Part shown: positions 49,851-52,819 of the stretch, one piece after another
How positions within the stretch are numbered: the first letter of the stretch is position 1
How the letters are laid out: each line of letters opens with the position of its first letter
Assembly: GCA_011109175.1 (NCBI GenBank)
Contig: RDEW01000010.1
Coordinates: forward strand, 1-64,000
Reading direction: 5' to 3'
DNA length: 64,000 nucleotides
Source of the DNA: Dicyema japonicum
Lineage: Eukaryota; Animalia; Dicyemida
The notes under the pieces: model-generated
The model's database searches: none
What the model was told of the DNA's origin: nothing
The model's input: only the letters and a program-made list of their open reading frames with translations
Translations under genes and position numbers: made by a program

Positions 49851-50176
49851 AAACGTGTGCGCAGGTCTATTTTGAGTCTTCTTTCTATCTCATGCTTACG
49901 TCTTAGCTTTGCGATCTGAACATCCATTTACTGAGTCTCTCGGGACTATGGAAGATCAGAATCATCTCATCTTAGAAACTTTACAAGCAGTACATCGATT
50001 TCATGCGCATACAGCTCGTAACAAATCTCGAGAAAAGAACATCGGGCCAACATGAGGTCTCAGCTGGGCGTGTCACATGAGTAATTATTTTAATTTCAAA
50101 AGAAAACCTAATGAGGGGAATATAAACGAGTATACCAAAACAAATTTATAGTTAACAAAGTGAAAAATTATCCAAA

Positions 50177-52074
50177 TTAGACAATTGTGGTAGTTGAGAA
50201 ACACAGTTTAAAAATGTAATTAAATCTCGCACCTAATGAATACAATAAATAATATTACTGGGGTGGATAATATTGTGATGATTTGTTAGAACGAGAGCTT
50301 CTGCTGCTTGAGTGATATCCTCAAACTCTACAATTCCATTAGTATTTGTGTTATTATCAACATTATAAACATAATTAACCTTTAGAAGGGAAAACACGTG
50401 TTCTTATTGGAATTGCAGCAGAACAGTCCGTAAAAACCTATTCATTAGTAGACAACAACTTTATTTACTTCCTCTTCAGTATAATGTGGAGGACCACTAA
50501 AAAAGTGCAAAGATCGATCAGGACTGGTCATTTCTGTAAATTACTAATGACGTTACTATTCTTTGAGGCAAAATGCAGGAGTAGAGAATCGGTTGTTACG
50601 ATCAGAAGAATAGTCTACAAATGCTTCAGACCCATCAGGAAGATTGAAAGGTCTAGCAACGGTTTCGATGTGGGACTGACGAAAATTACTACAATTAGTC
50701 CACAATAAACGAAAATAAAAGAGGTTTTCCAAACAGTACAAGTCCATGGAGCTTTTTGGCTACTCGTATTGCGGACGCATTGTCTGCCATCTCAATCAAA
50801 GTGCAGTCGCTCTTGAATAACAGAAATTTTATCTGAAATATTAAAAAACCTTAAACCCTGACCACATTGCCATAACAACAGAGGATGTTGAATACCCGTT
50901 GCGGATTCCAAACTGAAGTGTCAAACCCGTAAGCGGAAAGGACAGAGCCTGTTATTTCCGATTCAAAAGAGGGTGTTTCTTTGTCATTCCAAGTTTTAGA
51001 CTAAGCGTACAAATGAAAGATGAAACATTTAAATTGTGGGGTAAATCGTAAGGAAACTGATCATCGACATCTTAAGTGTATAAGAGTACAATACCATTGC
51101 TATAGTAAGATTCACGATATTCGTTATTATCAAAACGAGACATTTTAGATGGACGGGAATCAAAATTAGAACTCCTCGTCCGTGGTTCAGGATAGACTGG
51201 CCTATTGCTTTCTCGAGATTGTTTATTATAATCTAAAGATTATGATTTGTCTGCAATATAGTGATTTAAATGAAAGATTATGATGTTTTATTTGCAATTT
51301 GGGGAGGATCGGCATTACAAAAGTCTAACCTTCATCTACGTCGTAATTACAGTCGTCCACTCTGAAGAGAGTCACGTGCTTTGACTTGACATTATTAGTC
51401 CCTTAAAACCTTCATTATTTTGGCTGAAATAGAACAACAATTCTCATAAATATCACAATCGTCTAGTACATGGAGGGCGTTCTCTGCCTCATTTGGAGTC
51501 CTGAACCTGCAATATAAGTAAAAGTAAACTCTATAAATACTCTGACCTCCTCTCCCCGGAATATCGAAATCCTCAAAACTTTACCTAAATCCTTGCAAAT
51601 CTCCTTTACGACACTCTACGGGTAACTTTTAATAACTACCACATCAATCTCGTACTTTATGTTCGTAATTATAAGTGAAATTACTGATGAAAGGTTCCGG
51701 CGGTTATTACTATATTACTCATAATTATTACAGATAGCGATCAGAAAAATCTACAAAAACCTGTTTCCCACAAATATCCAAATGTTCGTTCTAAATTACG
51801 AAAATACAACAACCCTAGCGTATTGAACACACTTGGCTGCTGATTCGACGTCCTAAATGTGACTGAGACAAGAAATACCCCAAAATCAACGAATGCTCGA
51901 GAGTTTTGAGGTGAAACGTCGATATAACTAAAGAATTTGTAAGTTTATTATTAAGATTTTTATAAGAAAATACCAAATTGCTCCGAAAATGAGAAGTTTT
52001 TCATAAATATCCTTTTTAGAAGCAGAGTTGTGAACTCGGTTTATTATTACAGAATCTGTTGGATTTGCGGGCAT
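50177..52074 (-). CDS. HNRNPL: Heterogeneous nuclear ribonucleoprotein L (4 RRMs); 16 introns
   Basis: Manual splice gives MPANPTDSVII...FGAI|...DIYENCCSISAKIMK|...RVFNILCCYGNVVR|IKF..LIEMAD..FGKPL..LPDGSEAFVDYSSDRNNRFSTP..SLHFF..GIVEFED..AAEALVLTNH..YIFKLCFST, matching hnRNP L/smooth. One extra T near 50571; the start codon is inferred. Confidence 0.92.
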
Positions 52075-52819
52075 TAAAACCTAGATTTTTAATAACATTT
52101 AAACATACTAGACGTCAAACACGTTAAAACAAATTTCTTTCAATTTTTTTTAAATTATATTTTTTTATATATTTGTTATATTCAATAATATATTACATAT
52201 TTTGTAAGTTTTATTAGCCTATAAAGTAATTTGATTTATTTATAAAACCGAAGTCTCAGAATACTAATGAGATCGTCAAAAAAGAGTCCACTTTGTTACT
52301 ACGGAAAACACTAAACGTCCTTCCAATCATGGAATACCTTTCGTCACTGGGACTTCCTCAAGATGGCAAAGTCCCTGACCATCCCTCGGGCCGCACATCA
52401 AACTATATATGGACGCTTTCCCGAAATATGAGAAGAAACCTTCCCCGTAGTGGAGATTAATCCAGGACTTCAAAACTAACCGCAGGAAAAGGACAGGTGT
52501 GGACACAGGGATCACTTAATTAGGCGATACTTTTATCCACTTTCTCCCTTCTGTTGTTTAATGCAGATGACCTTATCATCGCAACCAGAAACCGTTACGC
52601 ATCAACCAGAGCCTCCAAGCCTCTACTGAAGCTGAATGGTCTTACGCATGTTCCAATCGCCTTTCACTATCGGCAATAAAATCAATTTGCATACTATTAA
52701 ATTTAGACTGAGTCTGCAAATGAAAAAATAAAATCAATAATTGTGAAGAACAATGAAAAATAATTTTTAGATAAAATGGCTTAAATGAAGAAAAAAATTT
52801 ATTTAAATTTTGCTAAAAA

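Follow-up and report, generated by a model that had tools for sequence, protein, structure and literature searches.

We found that intron 8 of the single hnRNP L gene in Dicyema japonicum is about four times the usual length, and we lean slightly towards reading this intron, from its sequence, as a miniature unproductive-splicing control element of the gene. It has company: long introns are concentrated in other splicing and 3′-end regulators of the same genome, where they tend to carry the motifs of the protein that the gene itself encodes. This pattern across genes is a more valuable result than intron 8 alone.

Dicyemid introns are described in the literature as very short, with reduced splice signals, and the D. 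japonicum genome has been reported as 67.5 Mb in 377 scaffolds with a mean intron length of 38.2 bp (PMC6736024). The mode of intron length lies near 23 nt, and its distance from the mean of 38.2 nt implies a real tail of long introns. We found no literature on alternative splicing in dicyemids. The stretch of DNA analyzed here, hereafter the window, comprises the first 64,000 nucleotides of contig RDEW01000010.1, and whole-genome searches covered the D. japonicum assembly of 67,542,437 bases in 377 pieces. The gene predictor was cross-validated and self-trained on 290 kb of this genome, and homology searches of the spliced hnRNP L model were conducted exon by exon, without the joined protein. 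The reads aligned to positions 49900-52300 came from four runs of one sample; these contain no joints and behave as DNA. The other host genes in the window were named by recognition, and we take them to be WDR1, MCTS1, NFS1, coronin, PPME1, and others.

The hnRNP L gene and its introns

The orthology of the gene was established by four RRMs, an RRM3 of the hnRNP L type, and the linker between RRM3 and RRM4 (RNNRFSTP). In searches of PDB by exon, two exons match hnRNP L alone and a third weakly prefers PTB (E 0.39). Four exons match TIGR01649, the hnRNP-L/PTB family, and the Pfam matches (PF13893, PF11835, and PF00076) place RRM2 before and RRM3 after the 97-nt intron. The exon preceding the 55-nt exon matches PF11835 at its end, and the last 10 codons of the 55-nt exon resemble the vertebrate RRM2 extension. 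Searching the whole genome with TIGR01649 recovered this gene as the one strong locus and no second strong locus of the hnRNP L/PTB family; PTB may have been lost in Dicyema or may be too fragmented by introns for detection. The coordinates of the gene and its features are listed in Table 1.

Table 1. Features of the D. japonicum hnRNP L gene, in window coordinates.
Feature	Position	Strand	Basis or remark
hnRNP L gene	50177..52074	(-)	17 coding exons, 16 introns; single copy
Intron 1 (46 nt), with A/T-rich sequence and a single CA	51928..51973	(-)	Second, smaller length outlier in hnRNP L
55-nt exon downstream of RRM2 (SKHV...VDE), coding for the C-terminal extension of RRM2	51330..51384	(-)	Last 10 codons with coding score +3.7
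Intron 8, 97 nt, GT..AG, phase 1, between RRM2 and RRM3	51233..51329	(-)	Frame analysis; recovered independently by predictor
5′ splice site GTTAGA	51324..51329	(-)	Donor score 4.4, best in region
19-nt unit A: branch-like CATAAT, then CTTT-CA; 3′ splice-site module without AG	51273..51291	(-)	TRF
19-nt unit B, running into the cryptic acceptor	51254..51272	(-)	TRF
Cryptic acceptor TTGCAG	51251..51256	(-)	18 nt upstream of productive acceptor
CAGACA, sole CANRCA-type site in intron 8, overlapping the cryptic AG	51248..51253	(-)	Motif from PMC3823766
19-nt unit C with the AG that follows it; contains branch-like CATAAT (51244-51239) and productive acceptor CTTTAG	51233..51253	(-)	TRF; TAAY position
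138-nt downstream exon, RRM2-RRM3 linker	51095..51232	(-)	Spliced model

The reading frame is open over all junctions, given the removal of one base at position 50570. This base, absent from all four read sets, is extra in the assembly, and the frameshift that it introduces in the exon following RRM3 is spurious. The open frame also requires a 22-nt GT..TG intron in RRM4 (50358-50379, reverse strand), which is not an assembly error because the reads carry no variant there. Short multi-copy repeats, with raised read depth and loose ends, lie on both sides of the gene (52239-52300 and 50027-50065).

In order, the intron lengths of the gene are 46, 26, 23, 22, 24, 23, 25, 97, 24, 26, 24, 22, 23, 22, 22, and 26 nt. 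The original prediction set intron 8 against nearly all other introns at 21-27 nt; its length of 97 nt was confirmed, but the 46-nt intron 1 had been overlooked. Intron 8 is one of three introns between RRM2 and RRM3. When every donor in the region was paired with every acceptor, four single-intron parses alone kept the frame, and the one spanning 51329-51233 combines the best sites with the shortest length. This parse is the only sensible one, the predictor found it unaided, and the intron sequence is invariant in the four DNA runs (one sample), which bears out the predicted phase-1 intron. That it is the longest intron in the window also held, as none longer was verified in the host genes there, and the longer introns that were predicted turned out to be mis-parses, gene fusions, or pieces of LINEs.

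Splitting the region into a 36-nt intron, an unrecognized 70-nt coding exon (51324-51255), and a 22-nt GC-AG intron would likewise preserve the frame. However, the GC donor of this parse scores -3.0 and the 70 nt have a coding score of -1.9, and 10 codons scoring +3.7 would be discarded. We rejected the hidden exon for its poor donor and negative coding score, and regard it as barely credible.

Splice sites, tandem modules, and CA content of intron 8

Two routes to a premature stop had been predicted for this intron, and translation confirmed both. When the intron is retained, the frame reads GGT TAG and terminates at positions 51327-51325. When splicing proceeds to the inner TTGCAG that ends at 51251, the product reads GAC AAA TCA TAA. 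Because the acceptor shift of 18 nt is in frame, this TAA alone makes the cryptic site a poison site. Both stops precede eight further introns. All 16 introns of the gene give a stop or a frameshift when retained, so the retention stop is uninformative, and the TAA is part of the branch-point motif TAAT in unit C, so it does not count as independent evidence for a selected stop.

The cryptic acceptor, whose last 10 nt are identical to those of intron 6 of the Dicyema hnRNP L gene, scores 4.4 (66th percentile of 311 introns), and the productive acceptor scores 3.3 (30th percentile). No donor in the region gives an open frame with it. In short introns of this genome the TAAY motif peaks 7-8 nt from the intron end; the TAAY of unit C lies at 8, so the productive branch point is probably located between the two AGs. 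A poison cassette exon was sought in the intron and not found, because neither a GT nor a GC donor lies downstream of the inner AG; this leaves an alternative acceptor, an alternative donor, or retention.

The intron consists of a 5′ part of ~40 nt followed by three degenerate 19-nt units that start at 51291, 51272, and 51253 (TRF: period 19, 2.6 copies, 64% matches); tandem duplication of the 3′ splice-site module accounts for most of its extra length. The duplicated sequence noted in the original prediction was verified as a 12-mer common to units A and C, with the copies 38 nt apart (shuffle P = 3e-4).

This architecture may have a neutral origin. In such a scenario, the 3′ end of the intron would have undergone slippage or a tandem duplication in recent times that copied the 19-nt module, with the inner AG and the excess of CA arising as by-products, and the CAG would be bypassed since the branch point used lies downstream. 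The duplicated 12-mer and the period-19 array are as expected from this process, about half of the CAs fall within the duplicated copy, and a branch-like TAAT downstream of the CAG has the usual spacing to the productive AG. Moreover, long introns occur in ordinary genes as well, a mean of 38.2 nt against a mode near 23 points to a real tail, and the long introns of PKA, CSTF2, and hnRNP A1 likewise have an inner AG, 15-18 nt before their ends. However, the duplication is not fresh, because the units are only 64% alike, and there is no length polymorphism in the four runs of the one sample. With one copy subtracted, the intron would still be 59 nt long with 7.5 CA per 100 nt. Neutral expansion also leaves unexplained the placement of the long intron among the three between RRM2 and RRM3, the enrichment of long introns in regulators, and the presence in these introns of the motifs of their own products (see below). 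On this evidence we consider a purely neutral origin unlikely, although it is the foremost of the alternatives.

The description of the intron as CA-rich was partly upheld. The count of nine CA dinucleotides is right (the first at intron base 29 and eight within the last 67 nt), and it amounts to 2.5 times the 3.7 expected from the short-intron background of Dicyema (P = 0.007-0.012). However, the count is within chance for the base composition of the intron itself (mean 7.2, P = 0.25), nine or more CAs are found in 11-16% of the 97-mers in the window, and about half of the CAs lie in the duplication, the removal of one duplicated copy leaving four CAs in 59 nt. Dicyema introns are U-rich and C-poor, whereas intron 8 is C/A-rich; its CA density of 9.9 per 100 nt, compared with 4.0 in short introns, is the highest among 14 curated long introns.

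High-affinity hnRNP L sites have been defined as CANRCA, CAN2RCA, and CACA (PMC3823766). The whole gene contains 13 such sites. The intron has no CACA and only one site of the CANRCA type, which is not rare given an expectation of 0.28 per 97 nt of short-intron sequence.

Hosting of snoRNAs is a usual cause of long introns in compact genomes. A small RNA in intron 8 was rejected for lack of an Rfam match and a folding z of +0.63, and a transposon relic was rejected because the intron has a single match in the genome and flat read depth. The sequence AATAAA is present at 51292-51287, as an intronic poly(A) site would require, but this hexamer occurs in only four of 25 3′ regions here, and that candidate was rejected too. 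Taken as one class, these explanations of the extra length appear highly improbable.

Turning back to unproductive splicing as the role of the intron, the geometry suggests how such a control might work. The productive route would require a branch point between the two AGs. When abundant, hnRNP L would bind the spaced CA elements, including the CAGACA that lies over the cryptic AG and beside this branch point, and would thereby hinder recognition of the productive 3′ end. The intron might then be retained, with an immediate stop, or the CAG might be used together with a branch motif lying further upstream, with a stop after three codons; in either case NMD would degrade the stop-containing hnRNP L mRNA. 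With a cassette exon excluded, the loop would have been rebuilt as retention or alternative acceptor use, similar to that of fungal srp2. The switch originally envisaged was of an alternative acceptor or retention. Both are geometrically possible; since the putative CAGACA site, the only high-affinity one, covers the cryptic AG and borders the productive branch point, we think retention is at least as likely as acceptor switching.

Judging from gene content, the NMD machinery that this loop would need is encoded in the genome. UPF1 is present (E = 1.6e-51), as are a UPF2-like gene (a weak Pfam match with a recognizable gene model), an EST1/SMG5-7-type domain, and Mago; UPF3 gave a weak match (E = 0.02). 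The proposal of autoregulation through alternative splicing and NMD is plausible, with indirect support from these genes and from the long own-motif introns of other regulators, but it draws little from the retention stop, which is uninformative, or from the TAA that doubles as a branch motif.

Long introns in other splicing regulators

One check suggested along with the original prediction was whether long introns are enriched in splicing-factor genes. We sampled 30 RRM loci and 30 kinase loci across the genome, chosen by domain score and not by intron length, and compared 12 RRM splicing/3′-end regulators with 29 kinase genes at a cut-off of at least 45 nt for a long intron. The gene models are ab initio predictions that were curated by eye, with names assigned by recognition. 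Long introns account for eight of ~83 introns in the regulators versus one certain (in S6K) and up to four of 243 in the kinases, an enrichment with Fisher p of 1e-4 to 3e-3, or 0.001-0.02 when only six regulator introns are counted. The long regulator introns were found in hnRNP A1 (99 and 52 nt), SRSF7 (121 nt), PUF60 (83-95 and 77 nt), CELF (54 nt), CSTF2 (65 nt), and hnRNP Q/R (46-63 nt). None was found in the curated models of TIA1, RBM39, a second SRSF7, a second hnRNP Q/R, and one ELAV gene; the 5′ end of the other ELAV gene is unclear in its model. Outside the regulators, long introns were found in S6K (79 nt), RBM19 (59 nt), UPF1 (83 nt), and PKA (42 nt), and these are mostly near-pure A/T.

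The long introns of regulators tend to be loaded with the motif of their own product. Among the 14 curated long introns, that of hnRNP L has the highest rank for CA, that of hnRNP A1 for UAG, and that of CELF for UG; the SRSF7 intron comes first or second for GAC/CGA, and PUF60 comes third for U-runs. The permutation p for this correspondence ranges from 0.0002 to 0.0012 over motif sets and gene-level pooling, and is 0.0014 without hnRNP L, for a small set with motifs that were picked post hoc after the sequences had been viewed.

These results bear on whether the binding factor is hnRNP L. Intron 8 could instead be regulated by another factor, e.g., an SR protein acting on CAUC-like elements, or could be constitutively slow to splice (detained). 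The enrichment of long introns in regulators holds whoever binds them, the high-affinity hnRNP L content of intron 8 is thin, and SRSF3 is known to act on the human poison exon through CAUC (PMC6885243). However, the diagonal of own motifs over five regulators suggests self-binding, and we regard regulation without hnRNP L as improbable.

Several individual introns show distinctive structures. In the CELF gene (locus L019, forward strand, 1929-1982), the 54-nt UG-rich intron directly follows an 80-nt RRM2 exon and has a competing donor 4 nt in; we take this exon to match the self-skipped exon 6 of CELF2. Decayed CELF copies are present at two other loci (L025 and L026). The 121-nt intron of the SRSF7-like gene (L005, reverse strand, 1844-1964) follows the zinc knuckle and contains an inner AG..GT mini-exon with a stop; a 26-nt micro-intron lies downstream, and the paralogue in L007 has 23 nt there. 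In the hnRNP A1-like gene (L014, reverse strand, 1363-1461), the 99-nt intron between RRM1 and RRM2 contains five UAG, two of which are UAGG. PUF60 (L003, forward strand, 1084-1178 and 1908-1984) has two long U-rich introns, with a strong inner AG in the first. The ~65-nt intron of CSTF2 (L002, reverse strand, 2095-2159) has its inner AG 15 nt before the end and contains an ATTAAA followed by a GU-rich tract, which resembles an intronic poly(A) signal. In UPF1 (L036, reverse strand, 2243-2325), the 83-nt intron comes after LPKANE, presumably the place at which mammalian UPF1 uses an alternative 5′ splice site to extend its regulatory loop. Two observations concern other splicing genes at L009 and L016: the genome contains a U11/U12-35K-like gene of the minor spliceosome, and SF3B4 has a tandem repeat of ~95 coding bases, possibly an assembly artefact.

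A broader reading, which we hold tentatively and place a little short of probable, is that an entire network of feedback loops of splicing factors was preserved in Dicyema while its introns shrank to an extreme degree. This network would include hnRNP L, hnRNP A1, CELF, SRSF7, PUF60, and probably SRSF1, each with one or two introns held at 50-120 nt and loaded with its own motif, and the hnRNP L switch would have been reassembled out of a 19-nt branch-point/acceptor module present in tandem copies. If this is true, the long-intron outliers would map minimal autoregulatory elements, and several loops regarded as vertebrate would date to the bilaterian ancestor. The minimal sequence for splicing-factor homeostasis would be <100 nt, compared with hundreds of conserved bases in the poison-exon regions of vertebrates, which bears on the ultraconservation of those regions and on the age of the hnRNP L loop. 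Long-intron outliers would also predict regulated introns, and thus offer a cheap genome-wide test.

Comparison with known autoregulatory systems

Exons of 86, 97, and 122 nt in the Dicyema gene presumably match human HNRNPL exons 4, 5, and 9 in size, on which a putative exact match of position and phase depends. The predicted equivalence of intron 8 to vertebrate intron 6 is supported as far as its placement between RRM2 and RRM3, and is narrowed no further; this placement agrees with the human poison exon, which leads to a protein without RRM3 and RRM4 (PMC6885243). Both PMC7547044 and PMC6885243 cite Rossbach 2009 for autoregulation of HNRNPL through exon 6A (alternative exon 7), upstream of which hnRNP L binds (PMC7547044).

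Intron 8 shares with this system the gene, the location between RRM2 and RRM3, the presence of CA-containing intronic sequence, a premature stop that would remove RRM3 and RRM4, and a genome with NMD genes. Unlike the vertebrate locus, it cannot hold a cassette exon, and in place of a long conserved CA cluster it has nine scattered CAs in 97 nt. The direction of control may differ as well, since vertebrate hnRNP L activates inclusion of the poison exon whereas the Dicyema geometry suggests blocking of the 3′ end.

We found no published account of autoregulation by hnRNP L in invertebrates; in Dicyema the putative loop may have survived, as originally proposed, or have evolved anew. Neither word searches with two exon frames nor two metagenome scans yielded a related hnRNP L locus, and a large search returned two spurious repeat proteins only; such negatives from single-exon queries tell little about full-length relatives.

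The principle of a long intron that is retained in a splicing-factor gene, within a genome of short introns, is already known from fungal srp2. The retained intron of srp2/SRSF5 falls in the longest 1-3% of introns, and its unproductive splicing was shown by ESTs and by stabilization in a Upf1 mutant (Lareau and Brenner 2015, PMC4379411). As in Dicyema, the genome has short introns and intron definition, and the splicing-factor intron at the position of unproductive splicing is unusually long. Retention with in-frame stops replaces the cassette in srp2, which is a parallel for intron 8. However, srp2 is an SR gene in genomes with introns far longer than 23 nt, and the extra length of intron 8 is instead a tandem repeat of a 3′ splice-site module. 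The putative acceptor switch resembles autoregulation of SRSF5 through an alternative 3′ splice site, in which use of the proximal acceptor introduces an in-frame stop that leads to NMD (PMC6885243); SRSF5 belongs to another gene family, the distance between its sites is not 18 nt, and their use is documented. Because intron 8 lacks a cassette exon yet would work like the exon-6A control, we classify it as a variant of this known system.
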